From Carpediemonas membranifera BICM (Eukaryota; Protista; Fornicata), in the NCBI GenBank assembly GCA_019828565.1, contig JAHDYR010000053.1:470214-534213 (forward strand): a stretch of 64,000 bases of DNA, written 5' to 3'. How positions within the stretch are numbered: the stretch's first letter is position 1; each line of letters opens with the position of its first letter. The position numbers and the translations under genes were made by a program. Under the pieces are notes generated by a model, which did not search any database, had not been told where the DNA came from, and worked only from the letters and a program-made list of their open reading frames with translations. Below are positions 1 to 55,831 of this stretch, in pieces.

Positions 1-1923
1 CATCGGTTGATGCACTATGGGCTATTGAGCACGCGAGACGTGGGTTCAAAGCGACCCACATTGGGACTCTGGACGTGGCTAAGGCCTTTGACCGTGTCCC
101 GAGGAGAGATGCATTGGACTCGTTGAGGGGGGAACAGAAGGGCCATTGAGATGTTGAAGGAGATGCATTTGCACACAAGGATCTCTATGCGAGGTAGCAG
201 CACTAGCGCCGCTACCAACACAGGAGTACGGCAAGGATGCACCACTGCTCCCTTCATCTTCACAAGATACCTTGCGGAAGTCCCTCACATCATTGCAAGC
301 TTAACCGCTCTAGGGAAGGAAGCAATTGAGAAGCTTCCTCCCGACATAGAGACCCTGAGACGAGTGGCAGCAAGGCCGTGCGTTCCCTGGATTGTCACAG
401 TCCTGTTCGTTGATGACATTACAATAGTAGCTCCCTCCCTTAAGTGGTTGGAGGCAGCACTTACGGCGGCATGGACATGCATGCTAGCGCTATCCTTGGA
501 GCCCAACGATAAGACCACCTATGTCTCAGAGGACGACACCCCCTCCCTCACCATCCATGGCAATCCAGTCATTAAGAGAGACGCGGTCAAGCTCCTAGGG
601 GTCCTCTTCGATACGTCCCGAGACTTCTCCACCCAGAATAGGACTATGGGCGAAAGGATAGACAGAGAGCTACGACTACTGAGAGCTAGCGGCGTGATGC
701 ACTCCAAGTTCTGTCCTCGCATTGTAGAGGTCTACACCCTCCCCAAGCTGCTGTACGGGTGGAGCGTCTGGGCTAATCATAAGGCTGTCTCCCAGGTAGG
801 CAAGCTTGCATCGGCAGCCCTAAGGATCAGCCCAACTGCATCGGAGGCGAAGTACCTGGAGCTAGGCTGGCTGCATCCAGAGGCAATGCTCCTGCTGGAC
901 AGATTCAAGCAAGGGGTGAGATGGGCGAGAATCCATCCGGGCAAGGATCTCCCAGACTGCATTGCTGAGGCACAAGGCAGCCTTGGCCTGTCCCACTCCG
1001 ACAGCCTTGACCTAGCAGCCTGTCGAGCAGCCCAGCTCTCTCACGACATAATCTGCCGTGGTAACAAAGTGGCTGTCAGGAGATACGTCACGGAGTCGGC
1101 ACTCACCCGCCCTTTTACCCGCTCTAACTACCCGGCCAGGCAGCCATACCTCGACCATCTAACGGCTGGGCCAGCGAAGCGCCTCGCGATGCTACGGCTA
1201 TCGTGTCTACCAATGCCAACGAGAGGGGCTCTTCCTGACGCGTGGCAGCCGGTCAGGGGAATCCTACAGGACCTGAAGGATGAACCGGAAGCCGCCGCAG
1301 CTCTTGAGGCATGTCCTCTCTGTCAGGGTGAGGCCATCGCCGCGGCTGTGATTGAGATCCTGACGTCCCCTACCAAGACCTTAGCAGTGCTGAGATCCAG
1401 GACGTGGGTTGTCCTGAACCAGACCCACTTGGCTAAGTGCGACCACTTCAAGATTAACCCCATCCTCCTTTTCAAGGACCCCCTGACCCTGAGCAGGCGT
1501 GACGACGCCAAGCTCACACATATGTTGAGTGTACTTTGTGACGCGTGACTGGTAGGTTCCCTCGCTTACATAGGAAAACGCCACCGTCCTCCCCGGTCTC
1601 AGGACCTCCTCGATCATCGTCCTGAGGGGAGCCCCATCGGGCTCGGAGCACAGAGTCCCGCAGCGCCAAGAGCTGGAAGTTGTGAGCTGGCCGACCCGCG
1701 TGGGTCATCTTTTTACCCTTCTTCGAAGGGGTTTTAGGCCCTCCTCTCCCTGCAGCTTCAGAACAGTACTCTTGGGCGCCGCAGCTCTGGCTTCCAATGT
1801 TATGAGAACCGTTGCCCTCCTGCGGCTGATCACCGCTCGTCTGGCTCGGGTTGTGGCCAGTGCCTGGAGGTGGACACCCCGGCACTGTATCAAAAAATAA
1901 ACTCAAAAACTCAAAAACTCAAA
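1..1923 (+). mobile_element. Non-LTR (LINE-type) retrotransposon, 3' portion (runs off left edge)
   Basis: RT motifs LDVAKAFD (frame 3, nt ~69-92), GVRQGC..P and LFVDD; C-terminal RLAMLRL/CPLC..H..C zinc knuckle; 3' UTR ending in AATAAA (1896-1901) then CTCAAAAA-CTCAAAAA-CTCAAA tail. Confidence 0.85.
3..1548 (+). pseudogene. LINE reverse transcriptase ORF, 5' partial, with a frameshift in the G6 run at 127-132
   Basis: Frame 3 carries DVAKAFDRVPR and stops at ~147-149; frame 1 (151..1548) carries QG and FVDD motifs; removing one G joins them. Confidence 0.75.
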
Positions 1924-3509
1924 GCTATCAAGCTCACCCCAACCCAGCGCACCAGGACCCAACTAGCTATCTTTTCGGACAACACCGCGGCCATCGCATG
2001 GGTCAACCGCCAGGGCTCCCCATGTCTCGCCGACACGGCCATTCGACTCCTGCAGGATATCTTCACCACGGCGAACACGAAGAATGTCGATATTCACTGC
2101 TTCCATATCGCAGGGCACCTCAATGTCCAGGCGGACCGGCTGTCGAGATTCGCAAAGCTCGATTGGCACTCACCCCGCGAGGTACTCGAGACGATAATGG
2201 CCAAGTGGGGTCCGGCGGAGATAGACGTCACTGCATCTCCGGACAAGAAGCTCGCACTGCCAGGATTCGTCAGGAAAGCTTGGTCCCTCGACGATCACGG
2301 CTTCCAGCGCTCCTGGACCGGCGCCAGGATCTATCTGGCTCCGCCGACAGCGCTTTTGGGAGCGGCACATCGTCGTCTGGAGAAGATTCGGACGCCTCAG
2401 ACCCCGACTACGTCCCCTCGGACGTGGAGGTCAGCGGCAATACTCCTCTTCCCCGATCTCAACTCACCCGAAGTCAGAGCGCTGAAACGGCTGTCCCAAC
2501 ACAAGATGTATCTCAGAGTCCACTCCTCGCACATGCTCAACACGGAGCTATCCTGGACCGAGAGGCAAGGAAAGATCAGAATGATTGCGATGATCGTCAA
2601 GACCCGTTCGACGAACTCCTCCGCCACGACAGGCTATCTCACTTCCGAAACGAGTCATCGCGCCGCTCAGCGGCTGGCTGGGTCTCTAAGTTCGTCCTAT
2701 CGCGACAGGCAGCCCTCTCCGACGCCGAACAACTCAGAGCATTCCTCCTCGCCGAGGGCGAGACCACTGGCCCGCAGAGTATCCACAGAAAGGGCTACTG
2801 GATCTGTCAAGCGGCTCCACTCGTCTCCAACTGGCGACCTCCGCCAGAAGCCAGGCAGATCATCAAGAGTGCGGAGAACGTAGCATCTCTCGACGGCCTA
2901 ACAGGAGGCGCACTACCGGTGACCAGAGCCCAGGTCCGCAAGGTCGTCGACAGGCGACGCTCCTCACCGAAAGCGTTCCAGGTAGCGCTGTTCGCTGCAC
3001 TTACATTCATCTCAGTCAGCCAGGGAGGCGAGATCTTCGGCCTGACGAGAGGCGACATCTCTTTCGATGAACAGGGCAACGCTATGCTCTGGTTCCCCCG
3101 CACCAAGACGGCCAAGGGCATCCATAAGCTTATTCCTAACAGGTCATGGGACCGCTTCAACCCGGCAAGAGCCCTCAAGGCCTGGGTCCCAACTGCGACG
3201 CGACACAATTCCGACTCGATCTGGCGCATGATCGGTCCATCGGGAGGTATATCACTCACGTGTCCACTTGCAGCGTCCACCCTCCGCACATGGATCCACA
3301 GCGCCTTCGGCCCGAGCGTTTCATGGCACTCCTTCCGCAAGGGGGCAGCTACTGAGCTGGCAGTGGCCAACACAAACACGGAGGTCCTCCTTTCAATGGG
3401 CACGTGGTCATCTACGAAGAGCATGCTGAGGTACATGGGTAACGGGGTACGCACCCATCCAGGGGTCCAGGGTCACCTGGCCTCAATTCTACTACAACCA
3501 CCACTCTAA
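1851..3509 (+). CDS. Tyrosine recombinase (DIRS YR), overlapping pol in another frame; true start uncertain
   Basis: RTKT, HSFRKGAAT, MGTWSS, LRYM motifs; first catalytic Arg position reads Q (SQGGE). Confidence 0.85.
   Translation: MWPVPGGGHPGTVSKNKLKNSKTQSYQAHPNPAHQDPTSYLFGQHRGHRMGQPPGLPMSRRHGHSTPAGYLHHGEHEECRYSLLPYRRAPQCPGGPAVEIRKARLALTPRGTRDDNGQVGSGGDRRHCISGQEARTARIRQESLVPRRSRLPALLDRRQDLSGSADSAFGSGTSSSGEDSDASDPDYVPSDVEVSGNTPLPRSQLTRSQSAETAVPTQDVSQSPLLAHAQHGAILDREARKDQNDCDDRQDPFDELLRHDRLSHFRNESSRRSAAGWVSKFVLSRQAALSDAEQLRAFLLAEGETTGPQSIHRKGYWICQAAPLVSNWRPPPEARQIIKSAENVASLDGLTGGALPVTRAQVRKVVDRRRSSPKAFQVALFAALTFISVSQGGEIFGLTRGDISFDEQGNAMLWFPRTKTAKGIHKLIPNRSWDRFNPARALKAWVPTATRHNSDSIWRMIGPSGGISLTCPLAASTLRTWIHSAFGPSVSWHSFRKGAATELAVANTNTEVLLSMGTWSSTKSMLRYMGNGVRTHPGVQGHLASILLQPPL
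1924..2883 (+). CDS. DIRS pol C-terminus: RNase H (5' truncated) plus Dam-like N6-adenine methyltransferase domain
   Basis: IFSDNTAAIAWVNRQG and HIAGHLNVQADRLSR (DIRS RNase H); DW..WGPAEIDVTAS..GF..W..IYLAPP (DIRS MT domain). Confidence 0.85.
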   Translation, partial: AIKLTPTQRTRTQLAIFSDNTAAIAWVNRQGSPCLADTAIRLLQDIFTTANTKNVDIHCFHIAGHLNVQADRLSRFAKLDWHSPREVLETIMAKWGPAEIDVTASPDKKLALPGFVRKAWSLDDHGFQRSWTGARIYLAPPTALLGAAHRRLEKIRTPQTPTTSPRTWRSAAILLFPDLNSPEVRALKRLSQHKMYLRVHSSHMLNTELSWTERQGKIRMIAMIVKTRSTNSSATTGYLTSETSHRAAQRLAGSLSSSYRDRQPSPTPNNSEHSSSPRARPLARRVSTERATGSVKRLHSSPTGDLRQKPGRSSRVRRT

Positions 3510-16615: not shown

Positions 16616-16791
16616 GTGTGCCGCGCAGGATTAGAATTGTTGAGTCTAAATCCGCTACCCTTCTGGTGTACGACAGGTGGGCCGTCAGACTGAACCTGTT
16701 CAGTCCTCTGGAGTTCATCCCAGGGGGGTCGACAACTTAAGTCACCTTTACATGAATCCTCCACATAAACCCCATAAACCCTCTAAATACC
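16616..16791 (-). repeat. Dispersed repeat: internally deleted inverted copy of 50111-50445
   Basis: 16651-16791 matches RC of 50111-50241 and 16616-16650 matches RC of 50411-50445; one substitution and a 10-bp indel. Confidence 0.93.
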
Positions 16792-17031
16792 CCAAATCGT
16801 TTGGACATAAACTGCGGTTAAGGCCAGCGTGCCATTTATATGCTATGTAGACGCTCATAAGCTCCATTATCACCACGGGGGGTTCTCCTCTTTCTGAAAA
16901 GACTCTCGAACGACGCTTCTATGCACTTTCAAGTCTTTTCATCGTTCTTGACTCAGCCCCAGAGCTGTAGACATGGGTCGCCCTTACAACCTCCCCGTCC
17001 ACTCCTGCTACATTTACATGCTACATTCTAT

Positions 17032-49795: not shown

Positions 49796-50110
49796 GGTCG
49801 GTCCGAAAATGGGGCGTGCCTTATGATACTTAACAGCAGCCGTGTCGCTGGTGAGATCGCGCCGTCTGTCAGGCCGTTAACATGTGCATGGCATATACGT
49901 ACTACATATCGAGACACGGTGTATGTGGAGAATCAGGCGGCTGGACTGTGTAGCCAGTTTTATTATGTTAAACTATGGGGACGAGGGTTGGGATCAAGCA
50001 GAGCGTCTACTTCAGGGATGGCAAAGAGGACATCGACGTGAACACCGTGCTCTGGACAGAGCTGCTTGCCGATCATTTGATGAATGTGCAGTTTATGTCT
50101 CCACCAATGT

Positions 50111-50445
50111 GGTATTTAGAGGTTTATGTGGAGGATTCATGTAAAGGTGACTTAAGCTGTCGACCCCCCTGGGATGAACTCCAGAGGACTGAACAGGTTC
50201 AGTCTGACGGCCCACCTGTCGTACACCAGAAGGGTAGCGGACATGAGGGCGTCGACGATGGTAAGAGCGATGGTTCTGGGTGGGATCTTGGTTCTCGCTC
50301 CAGCAGAAACTAGGAATGCGGCAGCTTTGGACGCGCACATTGGGATGTTGGAGCCATCCGGCCGCGGATTGATCACAGTTGGTTTGACGCGATAGTGCTT
50401 GTACTGTTCCTTTAGACTCAACAATTCTAATCCTGCGCGGCACAC
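50111..50445 (+). repeat. Dispersed repeat immediately upstream of the Fanzor (longer copy of 16616-16791)
   Basis: Near-identical inverted match to 16616-16791; contains the hairpin GACTGAAC-AG-GTTCAGTC. Confidence 0.9.
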
Positions 50446-52291
50446 TACCTCCACTCACCCACTTCAGCCCTCGTCTGTACCATCTGGCTTTCGTGCTTTC
50501 AGTCGTCGGTCTGCACGAAATATATACACATTCACTTGCCTGCTTGCGTACGTCGCTGCATCTGCGCACGCGTTGACCCCACCGAGGACGGTCAACCTGT
50601 TCGACGAGGAGGTCCTCAAGCAGATCGTCAGCATTGCTCAGCAAAAGGTGTCGAAGGCAAAGGCAGCGGATCGGTGCAGGTGGATTGGCGACCTGGCGAT
50701 TTGGAGGGACCCTGACATAACCCCACTCGTCCGGGACTTCAGGGAAGCCTACGTTGGAATTGCAGCGCCATTTCAGAGCTGGTTGGGTGAGTACTCCACA
50801 GCCACCCGGGTCTGGCTCTCGCGCGCGTCACCCGGGTACCTGACCCGTCTTCGTGCTGGATTAGAACGGGTGCGTCCGCTCCTCCATGATCGGCCGGGTG
50901 TTCGACAGGATTTTCTCGACACCCTAGGCGAGCTCGACACTGAGGTTGCCGCCATAGCCGCCGATCATGACAGGTATCATCCTCAAATACATGCATTGCC
51001 CGAGGGGCAACGGGTGGGTCGCACTGGTACCGTGGCCGAGGCCCTCGTCGGTGTGCTGTCGTGCGTCACGCGCATGAGTGCTGCAGTGACCAAGCTGGTC
51101 ACACTCACTCGTGCCGTGAACCTCGAGCTCAGTCAGGCCCTGCCAGAGCCGAAGCTCGTCCCGTTCGTGCCGATGGCACCGGTCAGGCCTGGGTTCATGA
51201 CCCTCGAGCGCGGAGTAACAGCGCTCACCCCAGCGATGAAGAGGCGCCTCCGTGTGCACGTGAATTGGTCAGCAACTAAGAACTAGACCACTGAGCAGGT
51301 TGATAGATACGAGCGTGATCACGGCGACATCACCAAGCTCCGCAGAGTGCTCTCTGTAAAGACTGACGGGGTCTCTGTTGCTGTGACAGTTTGGGTGGGT
51401 CGCGAGAAATACCGTGGCGGTCGGGTGGCTGACCGGCCCACGTACAAAAAAGGTAGCAGCAACAAGCGGGCTCGGCTCGGTCAGGATGACGCCGAGGCTA
51501 CTCCTGCCCCGGACATTCAAGCTCTCATGGGCTTCGACCCTGGTGCTCGGTCGCTGGGCGGCTACACGATCCGCCGCCCAGACGGGCATAGTGTATCTGG
51601 CGTACTCGCTAAGTGTGGCTACACTGCCACCCCCTCTTTCCGCGTGAATATGAGCGCAGCATCGTTCAAAACGACAAGTCTAGAGGCTCTCAAACAGTCG
51701 ATTAGGTTTGTCCATGAGAATATCGTTCAGATCATCAACGAGGGGACGAGAAAGTGTTTCCGCCGTGCGACTTTTTGCCAATCACTGTCTGCGCCTGAAG
51801 CACTTCGCCCGGGCTGGACGTCAACTCCTGGATGATCTCGGCGGGCGCCCCCGGAGCCCATTCATCTCGAAGTCGCGTATGGGGCTGCACTGTTCGGTTC
51901 CGCCGGCACTCCCTCCTGTGCACCGTACCGCCACTTTGCTCGAGCACTTCCTGGCATAATGCTCCGGCACAACGTCGTCGTGAGTGTCACGATGGTCTCG
52001 GAATTCCGCACTTCCATCGTGTGCCCATACTGCAAAGCACACTTCAGACGTGTGGTGCACACACACCGCACCATGCTCTACCAGAATCCTGCGTGCGAGG
52101 GAGCTCCATGGCGCGTTGAACGGCTACGTCGGCATCCCGAGCAGAGAGACATACATCTCAATCTCTCTCACCGAGATAAGAGCGCCAGCGAGAACATCCT
52201 TTGGTGCACCTTCGATGCAACTTCAGATCAGATAGAGCAATCTCCTTTCCATTACGGCACCCAGAGAGGTGCTCTTCCTCGCTATCATTAA
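50399..52291 (+). pseudogene. Fanzor (Fanzor1-type TnpB homolog) RNA-guided endonuclease, disrupted by TAG 51284-51286 and TGA 51833-51835 (or a compensating frameshift pair)
   Basis: ORFs 50399-51286, 51347-51835 and 51959-52291 share one frame (~630 codons): KTDGVSV, GFDPG (RuvC I D 51536), EVAYG, VSEFRTSIVCPYC (RuvC II E 52001 plus Zn finger), NPAC, HRDKSASENI (RuvC III D 52175). Confidence 0.88.
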
Positions 52292-52372
52292 CTTGCTAAG
52301 TTGAGCAAGCACGCGCTGCAGCGCGCGTGATATGCTGCGCATGATTGATAGAGTATGATGAACCACACTGCG
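52280..52372 (+). ncRNA. Candidate Fanzor omegaRNA scaffold plus guide
   Basis: Stem CTATCA(52282-87)/TGATAG(52346-51) encloses hairpins CTTGCT/AGCAAG, CACGCGC/GCGCGTG and ATGC/GCAT at the 3' end of the Fanzor ORF. Confidence 0.5.
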
Positions 52373-52729
52373 ATCCTGATGCTGCTCGGATCACTCTGTG
52401 TTTTGGATTCAACAATTCTACGACGGAGCGAACTTGGACACAGTCGCAGCGACCCTTCACAAAACACTCAAGGCTGCTTCTGGTCCCCGCCCGCCCAAGA
52501 AGGCGTACATTCGCGCCGCCATCGCCGGACCCTTCATCCTGGACATGGTCCGCACCATCCACTCCTACAACCACACCGCCCAACAGGACATCTCGTTCTG
52601 CCTGAGGCAAGGCTACTCGGCCGTTGATTACTAAGCACCCCACCCGCGCCTTACCCTTTACGTGAGTTGGCTCATAAATGGATCATTCTAATCCTGCGCA
52701 CAACCAAGTATCATCGGCTCATTTGTTTC

Positions 52730-55700
52730 ATGGGCATCACACCTCAGTTGAGCACTGGGATGAGTTATACCAGTGAAGAGTTATGGTCTGATGGAAGGGC
52801 TGTTATCGTCGGCGTTCTAGTCGCCGTCATTTCGACCGCGATCATCTCTTGCTGTGGCTGTGGTGTTGCCGTTTACAAATATCGGTCCCGCCTAATCCAT
52901 TTTGCGAAGCGAATCTGGGCAGAGAAGAAGAATCCTGCTGGACGCCCAGACCCAGCCACTCAGCCAGCCCTCGACCCAGATCCAAATAGGACTCGAAGCG
53001 TCCTTGCTAAGCTCTCCACCGCTCTCGGTTGTTGTCGTATGCGTGCGCTCATTCGACACCGGGTCGATTTAATCAGCGCTCTTGCGTGCGAGTGGCTGAC
53101 GGAGACTGAACACGACGGGCCACTGATGGCCGAGCAGGCCAACGAGATCAAGCAATATGCTCGTAGTCTTACTAGGCTAACGCTAGCTAAAGGCTGGCCC
53201 GAGGACTGGCAGACTGTCGACGCCAAGAGGATCAACGAGCTGGACGAGTGCATCAACAAGTTCGCCGAGTCGCTTAACGATTCAAGGCGTGCCAAAGACG
53301 CCGCTCGGTCCGACTTCTACAGACTGGAGCTTTACTACTCACCCCCCGCTCTGTCTCCCCCTCTCGATCCCGACAAGTGTTACCAGCTCTACAATTTTGA
53401 TTTCCGAAAACTCTACAACATCGCGGACGAGTGCCAGGCTGGCAAAAATTTGGAGGTATTCAGGTCAACCCTGCCTCTTCGTGACATCACTAGCGCCGAC
53501 TATACCGGCCACGCCAAGTTCTACAGAGGTGTGTACTTCAAAGGGAAGGAGGGCAAGCTTACCAGCACGGATGTCAGTCTCGTTCCGGTCCTCATCAAAC
53601 TCCTCTCCGTACCTGGTGGTCTCGAGAATGAAGCGAGAGAAGAGTTGGCGCGCATGATCGATAACCGCATGTACTTTCCAGGAGCTCACCTATCCCCGTG
53701 GTACTACGCCGTTGGTAAGACCAAGGTGCTGTTGGTGTTCAATGACATCGTTCTTAACACCCCCAAGGCCAACGATTTCTACAACGACTGGCCTCGCCCG
53801 GCGGACAATGGCACCATTCCTGCGGGTGGATTGAGTGTGCCTCTCGTTGAGATCGACGCCGACGATTTAAGCCCTCCCGTCTCACCGAAATGGGGCGGAT
53901 CAACTGACAAGACTCGATTCCGGCGATCCGATGATATGCTCGGTAGTGGGTCCTATAAGATCGTATACAAGGCAAGGGATCACGAGGATTGTGTCGACGT
54001 GGCCTGGTGTGAGGTTAGGGTGAAAGACCCCAGTAATGAGCGCGAGACCGAGCGGATACACCGGGAGATGACGCTGCTGTCTACTCTTGTCCATCAGAAC
54101 ATCATCTCATACGTTGACAGCTGGACGGATGGTGACCACATCATTCTCATCACCGAGCTTATGTCTGGCACCCTGCGCCAGTACGTCATGCAGATGAAAG
54201 AGATCGGGTCCACTATAGAGGTCAGCGACATCGCCAAGCACTGTCGCCAGATCCTATTGGGCCTCAGCCACATGCACGGGCAGACGCCACCCATCATACA
54301 CCGCGACTTGAAGGGCGATAACATTTTAATCGACAGTAACCGCAGTGAGGTCAAGATCGGCGACTTCGGGGTCTCGCGCATCCTCGAGGAAACTCACGCC
54401 GAGACATTTGTTGGTACACCGCAATTCATGGCCCCTGAGATGTTTGTGGGGACATACGATGAAGGCGTCGACGTCTATTCGTTCGGGATGTGCGTCCTCG
54501 AGATGGCCACGGGCACGATTCCTTATGGAGAGTGCGGAAACTCGTTTCAAGTGTATGAGAAGGTCTCCCAGGGCATTCTTCCCGAATCACTAGCCACTGT
54601 CACAGACGCCACCGTCCGGGACTTCATCCAGCGCTGCCTTCTCCCGCGCGACACCCGCCCCTCCGTCGAAGACCTCGCCACCCACCCCCTCATGCTCGGC
54701 GACCGTCTGGAGGTCCAAGCGGACGGGACCTTTATTGTCACACTCAACCTGACCATCGCAGGCAAGCCTCGGGAAGTCGAGTTCTGGTTCGACGAGACGG
54801 AAGACAGAATTGAGAGTGTCGTCCAGCAGCGTTTGGCCGAGCTTCGTTTGAACGAGGCAGACTCTGACGTTGCGGCTGTCCGGATTCGTGCCGCCCTTCG
54901 TTGCCGCCCACAAGCTGGCATTGCTATGCCCCCACCCGTGGCCAACCTTGATCCTACAAACCTTGATCAGGCAGGTCTGATGGCGTTGCCTGACGGTGAT
55001 GATCGTATCAATGGCGTCGCCTTCCTGACGAACAACACCATGCTCACCGCAGCCGGTAGATATATCAAGCTTTGGGATCATGCAGGCAGGTGCATTGGTG
55101 GGCTGGATCAGTTCCGTTTTGTTTCCTGCATCGCTGTCTCCAAGAATGGGTTGATCGCATCAGGTGACGAGTCTGGCAAGGTATGCTTGTGGAAACCCGA
55201 TGGCCTGCCACTTAGGGTCTTCAAAGGACACACAGGGTATGTTACCGGCCTCGCCTTCTCCCCAGACGGCAAGACGCTGGTGTCCGGATCCTTGGACAAC
55301 AAGGTCAGGGTGTGGGACGTCTACAGCGACGAGTGCATGAAGTTGAAAGGGCACAAAAAATGTGTACTCTCCGTCGCTATCTCCCCTGACGGCAAGACTG
55401 TTATTTCTGGGTCCAGTGACATGACGATCAGGGTGTGGAAGTCATGCTCACGCAGTCTCGTGACGACTCTGAAGGGACACACTGATTGTGTTGCTAGCGT
55501 CGCCTTCTCGCCGGACGGTACACTGCTAGCCTCTGGATCGTACGACAAGACCATTAGACTCTGGGACACCAGGAACTGGAAGTGTGTCCGCGAACTCAAC
55601 GGCCATGATGCCCAGGTCTTCTGTGTCACCTTCTCACCTGACGGCAAGACCCTCGCCTCCGGGTCATGGGACCAGACGGTCAATCTGTGGGATACTGTGA

Positions 55701-55831
55701 GCCGCAAGTCCTTCAAGATAATTGGGTTTGATGACCTGGTCCTCAGCCTCGCCTTCTCCCCAGACGGGTCGACCCTGCTATGTGGGTTTGAGGAAGATAC
55801 GACCAAGCTGTGGCGACTCCCTCAATTGTAA
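52730..55831 (+). CDS. Membrane-anchored WNK-family kinase fused to a C-terminal WD40 propeller
   Basis: N-terminal TM (AVIVGVLVAVISTAIIS); LGSGSYKIVYK..VAWCE (WNK), IIHRDLKGDNI, KIGDFG, GTPQFMAPE; about 7 GH..V..VAFSPDG..LASGS.D repeats. Confidence 0.9.
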   Translation: MGITPQLSTGMSYTSEELWSDGRAVIVGVLVAVISTAIISCCGCGVAVYKYRSRLIHFAKRIWAEKKNPAGRPDPATQPALDPDPNRTRSVLAKLSTALGCCRMRALIRHRVDLISALACEWLTETEHDGPLMAEQANEIKQYARSLTRLTLAKGWPEDWQTVDAKRINELDECINKFAESLNDSRRAKDAARSDFYRLELYYSPPALSPPLDPDKCYQLYNFDFRKLYNIADECQAGKNLEVFRSTLPLRDITSADYTGHAKFYRGVYFKGKEGKLTSTDVSLVPVLIKLLSVPGGLENEAREELARMIDNRMYFPGAHLSPWYYAVGKTKVLLVFNDIVLNTPKANDFYNDWPRPADNGTIPAGGLSVPLVEIDADDLSPPVSPKWGGSTDKTRFRRSDDMLGSGSYKIVYKARDHEDCVDVAWCEVRVKDPSNERETERIHREMTLLSTLVHQNIISYVDSWTDGDHIILITELMSGTLRQYVMQMKEIGSTIEVSDIAKHCRQILLGLSHMHGQTPPIIHRDLKGDNILIDSNRSEVKIGDFGVSRILEETHAETFVGTPQFMAPEMFVGTYDEGVDVYSFGMCVLEMATGTIPYGECGNSFQVYEKVSQGILPESLATVTDATVRDFIQRCLLPRDTRPSVEDLATHPLMLGDRLEVQADGTFIVTLNLTIAGKPREVEFWFDETEDRIESVVQQRLAELRLNEADSDVAAVRIRAALRCRPQAGIAMPPPVANLDPTNLDQAGLMALPDGDDRINGVAFLTNNTMLTAAGRYIKLWDHAGRCIGGLDQFRFVSCIAVSKNGLIASGDESGKVCLWKPDGLPLRVFKGHTGYVTGLAFSPDGKTLVSGSLDNKVRVWDVYSDECMKLKGHKKCVLSVAISPDGKTVISGSSDMTIRVWKSCSRSLVTTLKGHTDCVASVAFSPDGTLLASGSYDKTIRLWDTRNWKCVRELNGHDAQVFCVTFSPDGKTLASGSWDQTVNLWDTVSRKSFKIIGFDDLVLSLAFSPDGSTLLCGFEEDTTKLWRLPQL

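Follow-up and report, generated by a model that had tools for sequence, protein, structure and literature searches.

A dead Fanzor gene copy of Carpediemonas membranifera lies in a probably LTR-derived element that is interrupted by two nested non-LTR retrotransposons

The window analysed here is a stretch of 64,000 nucleotides from the genome of Carpediemonas membranifera (24.2 Mb, 69 contigs). An earlier note, made from its letters alone, had read three open reading frames as a hidden Fanzor, a eukaryotic RNA-guided nuclease related to TnpB. It was found that the frames at 50399, 51347, and 51959 do form a single frame, 631 codons long and containing stops at positions 51284 and 51833, that all of the Fanzor motifs named in the note are present in the read-through frame, and that the RuvC acidic residues are D 51536, E 52001, and D 52175 (+ strand), as claimed, with a zinc finger at 52022-52096 (+). 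Intact siblings had been suspected elsewhere in the genome, and copy L044 has an unbroken frame of 642 codons. Relative to L044, the decayed coding region of the window occupies 50528..52291 (+) and covers residues 54-642, the pieces being 91, 94, 100, and 96% identical. A coding start at 50399 had to be abandoned because 50399-50524 consists of repeat, purine tract, and leader and is non-coding. The lack of a 5′ ATG was noted correctly; alignment of the copies showed that it was lost in a 416-bp deletion together with the leader and about 52 codons, leaving 4 nt at 50521..50524 (+).

Alignment also located the other breaks in the coding region (+). The TAG at 51284, which is common to the window copy and L033, is a stop, but the TGG origin suggested for it was not upheld, as most copies have TTG (Leu). 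The TGA at 51833 is present, but it is an out-of-frame reading inside a frameshifted piece and not a true break. The segment at 51775-51850, thought to read better in the +1 frame, is in that frame 100% identical to residues 471-495 of L044, and comparison with 15 full copies placed the suspected compensating frameshift pair at 51772 (one T gained) and 51847 (one C lost). At 51772 and 51847 both the minority and majority forms also occur in public short-read contigs; homopolymer indels in the window copy may in part be assembly errors. A zinc-finger cysteine has become tyrosine at codon 52079, corresponding to C573>Y of L044. The stop, the frameshift pair, the 5′ deletion, and the lost cysteine confirm that the Fanzor copy of the window is real but dead.

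The assignment of the family to TnpB/Fanzor is well supported. L044 fits the Bao-Jurka motif D-X(125-275)-[TS][TS]XX-C4-X(5-50)-RD, with D392, TS at 550, C554/557/573/578, and RD at 604-605. Its triad D392/E547/D605 is conserved in families 1-3, at 45-51% identity, and E547 is in the rearranged position described for the RuvC glutamate of Fanzors. Protein searches used the window pieces singly and the natural sibling L044. In the ESM Atlas, the clusters nearest to the unbroken protein are TnpB/Fanzor proteins of algae and giant viruses (features 0.97, TM 0.57-0.61), and its feature-matched clusters carry PF07282 and PF26935. The profile check proposed in the note gave a divided answer: Pfam yielded nothing above cut-off for the window pieces or the unbroken sibling, and only a sub-threshold Cas12f1-like zinc ribbon in the last window piece (E 0.039), whereas the ESM Atlas placed the sibling with TnpB/Fanzor. 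A sequence search of the PDB returned weak Cas12f zinc-ribbon matches only, and no homologues outside Carpediemonas membranifera were found at E 1e-3 in protein searches and viral contigs. Two AF2 models (pLDDT 37 and 33) were too poor to judge the active site; the top five Foldseek matches of these low-pLDDT models were SpuFz/GtFz, without significance. The protein is likely a Fanzor1 rather than a Fanzor2, because of its size, its non-IS607 carrier, and the weak SpuFz/GtFz fold ranks. One family member, P0001, is annotated by NCBI as a cytosine deaminase, apparently a mis-annotation.

The coding region is part of an element at 50108-52702, larger than the earlier call, which had missed the element ends, the duplication, the target motif, and two nested retrotransposons. 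The element has TG...CA ends and is flanked on both sides by the 5-bp duplication ACCAA (50103..50107 and 52703..52707, +); exact 5-bp duplications were found at 18 of 24 loci. Its left end consists of the first 13 bp (50108..50120, +) of a 41-bp LTR-like unit, 7 bp of which equal a Ty3/gypsy U5 end, and the remaining 34 bp, R1, were placed by repeat comparison at 50411..50444 (+). Abutting R1 is a purine-rich tract (50445..50460, −) in the layout of the junction of polypurine tract (PPT) and LTR in a complete Ty3 of this genome (L068), which from its sequence we infer to have a PPT role. The right unit, R2, has an inner part at 52395..52420 (+), located by repeat comparison, and an outer part at 52685..52702 (+) that ends in ...GCACA and is 3 bp shorter than usual. 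The two 41-bp units are alike over their last 29-34 bp, and their first 12 bp differ in all copies. The Fanzor gene is antisense to this LTR-type layout, in which the purine tract abuts the left unit on the minus strand.

The left unit is interrupted by U (50121..50410, −), identified by homology as the 5′-truncated 3′ end of a non-LTR retrotransposon encoding a reverse transcriptase (RT) and a restriction-like endonuclease (RLE), inserted at TTTAGA with duplication of this 6-mer. U is 99% identical to L064 and 97% to L065, a near-full copy. The RT of L065 matched RVT_1 (E 5e-10) and, in the PDB, best matched R2 proteins; in the U element the RT is followed by a CCHC knuckle and the RLE (motifs recognized by eye), with a zf-RVT cluster at 0.94. 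The 3′ end of U is present in 75 copies, nearly always inside a left unit, and about 90% of left repeats hold U, with about five clean left units lacking it. The 5′ break varies by copy, and the junction is always at the duplicated TTTAGA, often with extra bases. L064 is a U-family element in a Gypsy LTR, where a similar 7-mer is duplicated and two copies of the empty site exist; U is therefore an independent target-primed insertion. The idea that U is a transposase remnant was rejected on its identity as an RT-RLE 3′ end, and truncation of U by Fanzor cutting was rejected because the break is on the wrong side of the predicted cut. Three left ends (G000 C4:650151, C4:667016, and C8:827850) have an identical 10-bp host flank and at least two U lengths, which can mean that U changes after insertion or that paralogous promoters were struck twice. 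At the left junction of L025, from which R1 is gone, a short AAGGT-type repeat lies between two TTTAGA copies, possibly a scar of templated repair.

The right unit is interrupted by V (52421..52684, +), which is likewise a 5′-truncated 3′ end and comes from a second non-LTR retrotransposon; ATTCTA is duplicated on either side of it (52415-20 and 52685-90). Members of the V family also interrupt about five other units, and at L067:1-10000 the 3′ part of this family forms a tandem array with a period of 1084 bp, near the complete Ty3 (L068).

Outside the element, 10 bp before its left end, is the promoter-like host motif GYGCASWTTAWG (50086..50097, +). This motif is found 9-11 bp before the left end at 25 of 26 loci, and the combination of motif and left end gave 26 strict matches genome-wide, with none in the control. 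As GCASWWTAWG it occurs 17 times in the window (1.0 expected), in either orientation and before many genes, several copies being 11-47 nt before host ATGs. The host motif is probably a promoter element, and GCASWWTAWG is a candidate bidirectional core promoter of Carpediemonas. A host ATG lies within 50 nt downstream of many elements; 27 nt past the window element begins a gene (52730-55831, +) for a 1033-aa protein with a WNK-like kinase domain and, after it, a WD40 propeller, placing the element in a promoter region. A solo unit, comprising left end, U, and R1 without Fanzor, was found at 16617..16794 (−); it has its own 5-bp duplication, lies at a distance of 11 bp from the motif, and precedes a host ATG by 11 nt. 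Other solo units with their own duplications are L052 and L053, and a tandem arrangement is present at L054.

With the last Fanzor piece as query, at least 150 matches were obtained in the genome. The genome search that the note had proposed yielded about 60 near-full copies at 92-97% identity, and there is a second group near 50%; in all, three Fanzor families with more than 100 copies are carried in LTR-derived shells. Among the approximately 60 copies that scored best, a single one retains a full frame, and singleton variation among the copies is near neutral (44 synonymous to 91 nonsynonymous). Two runs labelled as other organisms (X4 and X6) contain low-depth element pieces at 95-99%, possibly by contamination or co-culture.

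The complete Ty3/gypsy element (L068:346-4649) is 4.3 kb long, with identical 94-bp LTRs, a purine tract, a 5-bp TSD, and an 8-bp palindrome where a tRNA primer site is expected. The end of its U5 equals the first 7 bp of the left end of the Fanzor element; its insertion is not motif-targeted. A related 43-bp unit, M, is present in 233 copies, sits 11 bp from the host motif, lies by its coordinates on both sides of family-2 Fanzors, and in 17 cases precedes a palindromic primer site of the L068-Ty3 type. No gag-pol among the matches listed was tied to M by coordinates, and no helper combining the exact left unit with a palindromic primer site was found. After the left repeat there is no tRNA primer site, and after R2 there is only half a palindrome of the resident-Ty3 type. 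Standard LTR copying was rejected, since the right-type start occurs at 0 left ends compared to 26 for the left type and the LTRs are never identical; left and right repeat alleles within copies are uncorrelated or weakly correlated (p 0.06). As the note had stated for the window, no partner transposase is visible, and none was found in any element copy. A Ty3-type integrase is the likely agent of integration. In its derivation from an LTR element and its promoter targeting, the carrier resembles a Ty3-dependent non-autonomous element, but its LTRs are not identical.

Downstream of the coding region, fold prediction gave a candidate omegaRNA scaffold (52292..52420, +), the 5′ arm of which (about 52331-52341) is predicted to pair with the last bases of the element in intact copies; V breaks it in the window copy, and so the RNA stem is destroyed here. 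The predicted folds of L036 and L040 have z values of −3.2 and −4.6, the closing stem is present in 28 of 30 copies, and family 3, with a different sequence, has the same closing stem at the element end (z −5.7). An Rfam search of the RNA region gave no match. If the RNA works like known omegaRNAs, a stem closing at the right end of the element would make the host flank the guide, and the right ACCAA duplication (52703..52707, +) is the putative guide start in intact copies. The five bases before the duplication have no conserved letter (24 sites), and therefore an adjacent TAM would not be possible at empty sites. The element's own end as TAM would be alike in filled and solo alleles, and the promoter motif about 5 nt upstream would be the only feature parting empty from filled sites. 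The idea of a constant guide within the repeat, TTTAG serving as its TAM, was rejected, as the repeat is in the closing stem and lesions are not enriched in R1. Because integration is fixed 10 bp from the motif, the motif might serve as a spaced TAM, with the Fanzor of a Ty3-integrated element driving its spread by cutting element-free alleles; this proposal is tentative and we consider it doubtful. If it is true, such a TAM would be in every empty site and missing from the filled right flank.

Comparison of the bodies of the copies showed that they are mosaic: four-gamete conflicts stand at 18% for distances up to 20 bp and climb to 70% once the distance exceeds 500 bp. Pairs on the same contig are more alike (36 loci, permutation p 0.0016), and pair identity is 99.3-99.4% for copies 19-52 kb apart but has dropped to 95% by a distance of about 1 Mb, in a test made on the element family alone. 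In close pairs, U is of unequal length, and the left-end variant and the duplication are not the same. Chimeras of families 1 and 2 exist; L008:1180 and L015:1187 have an identical family-2/family-1 junction on two contigs, L008 with an open frame of 580 codons. Internal deletions have junctions with 0-3 nt of microhomology or short inserts, on which grounds their interpretation as spliced introns was rejected. The mosaic bodies and the decay with distance indicate DNA-level rewriting after, or instead of, retrotransposition. The host is haploid, has sex genes, lacks NHEJ, and relies on homologous recombination (PMC8516963), and DNA-level exchange of bodies is fitting for such a host.

We favor, with a probability of about 0.55, the interpretation that the window contains a dead copy of a non-autonomous element of about 2.4 kb, in which one Fanzor gene is antisense between 41-bp repeats derived from mini-LTRs and which would depend on Ty3 for its integration. 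The resident Ty3/gypsy integrase would make new sites in trans, directed to them by a factor that sits on the promoter motif, and the left end would come from the LTR of the helper and not from the element's own right repeat. The site-specific RT-RLE element would then fill the left repeat, and homologous recombination would shuffle the bodies afterwards. An intact Fanzor would bind the RNA with its stem closing at the right end and use the host flank as guide; most plausibly, an element-free allele would be cut after mating (allelic homing), and no excision would be needed. This interpretation is backed by the TG...CA ends with their duplication and motif spacing, the U5 match to the complete Ty3, unit M, the catalytic triad, the solo units and tandem, the predicted RNA fold in two families, the absence of a transposase from all copies, and the haploid host with its sex genes and homologous recombination. 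The unequal repeats, the lack of an exact helper, the half palindrome after R2, the lack of a gag-pol tied to M among the matches listed, the untargeted L068 Ty3, the missing adjacent TAM, the near-neutral variation, and the single full frame count against it.

The ends alone, with a 4-bp terminal inversion and a 5-bp TSD, could also belong to a DNA transposon, cut-and-paste or replicative, moved in trans by a Ginger-like (Gypsy-integrase-derived) transposase that needs only TGTG...CACA, with Fanzor restoring excised copies as in known Fanzor1 elements. Many internal deletions keep both ends, identical deletions or chimeras occur at sites on different contigs, L041 and L044 have a common U junction, and nearby copies are most alike, all as such a transposon would have it. 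However, direct repeats with a purine tract, the existence of solo units, and a primer palindrome of Ty3 type at M do not suit it, most close pairs are unlike in U and left end, and no such transposase was seen in a genome-wide search that was swamped by Gypsy integrases; we regard it as unlikely. Ranked just after it is the possibility that Fanzor bodies are copied by homologous recombination into pre-existing solo mini-LTRs of a Ty3 family during break repair, possibly Fanzor-triggered, so that each site would retain the duplication and the U length that it had before. In L035/L038, L004/L013, and L034/L037, near-identical bodies are combined with different U, left end, repeat alleles, and TSD; this, the decay of identity, and the rise in four-gamete conflicts agree with such copying, which also accounts for the unequal ends. 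L034 and L037, though, are alike only in an internal tract of about 1.5 kb, as in ordinary patch conversion, the RNA fold places the guide in the flank and not the repeat, R1 shows no concentration of lesions, and homology on the right would be only about 15-29 bp.

The least probable of these alternatives, in our estimate, makes the RT-RLE element itself the agent that inserts the cassette, by priming at TTTAGA of a solo mini-LTR, copying a truncated piece of its own RNA, and jumping to the 3′ end of the antisense Fanzor RNA. R2-type enzymes do jump templates, all junctions fall at TTTAG, where extra or untemplated bases occur, the length of U varies, and nearly all of the 75 U ends are in these left ends. 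Truncated cassettes with a TTTAG-type repeat would be expected, but the one examined has a right-type repeat; simple insertion into existing elements accounts for U, and one broken near-full copy of the RT family is left.

TRIM/LARD-type elements and the promoter-targeted Ty3/Tf1 group have TG...CA repeats, a purine tract, a 5-bp duplication, solo units, and tandems. The Fanzor element resembles them also in its fixed distance from a promoter-like motif, but its repeats are only 41 bp and never identical, there is no tRNA primer site, and it carries an antisense nuclease gene. The nesting of U and V in terminal repeats is comparable to that of Xenopus Tx1 in Tx1D. U and V are like R2, CRE, and Utopia (PMC4640811) in RT, zinc knuckle, RLE, 5′ truncation, short duplication, and target preference, whereas the latter target an RNA gene or microsatellite and not the terminal repeat of another mobile element. 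Fanzor1 (SpuFz1, GtFz1; Bao and Jurka 2013, PMC3627910) is alike in its length of about 640 aa, the D...TS..C4...RD motif, the rearranged RuvC-II glutamate, the structured RNA (in our element a predicted one) between stop and right end, and the non-autonomous, multi-copy carrier; it differs in having TIRs and a fixed TA/AT-rich site usable as TAM, in contrast to the direct repeats and random 5-bp duplications found here. The TnpB/Fanzor2 systems of IS200/IS605 and IS607 share a TnpB-type nuclease and an RNA (predicted in our case) reaching the right end, but they have no TSD and a conserved left-end TAM, neither of which is true here.

A 2026 review found no evidence of a retrotransposon encoding Fanzor and saw no advantage in one (PMC13565253), Jiang et al. 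described only proximity of Fanzors to Gypsy, and our literature search found no paper joining Fanzor with Carpediemonas. New here are a variably truncated RT-RLE retrotransposon in the great majority of left repeats, with a second in this right repeat, and empty sites without a conserved adjacent TAM but with a motif about 5 nt away. Also new is that in two families the predicted 3′ RNA has a stem that closes where the element ends, which would make the guide host flank, as is the finding that the copies are mosaics and grow less alike the farther apart they lie on the chromosome (p 0.002), and hence DNA exchange of bodies. These features raise the question of the role of an OMEGA nuclease in an element that never excises, and of how empty and filled sites are told apart where no fixed sequence adjoins the insertion site. 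With its naturally unbroken gene, the family offers a very divergent and compact eukaryotic nuclease that is predicted to be RNA-guided, and its copies document how breaks have been repaired in nature by a host that lacks NHEJ. Elsewhere in the window, at 151-3500, there are ORFs in which RT and RNase H motifs of the kind usual in DIRS-type retroelements were recognized by eye.
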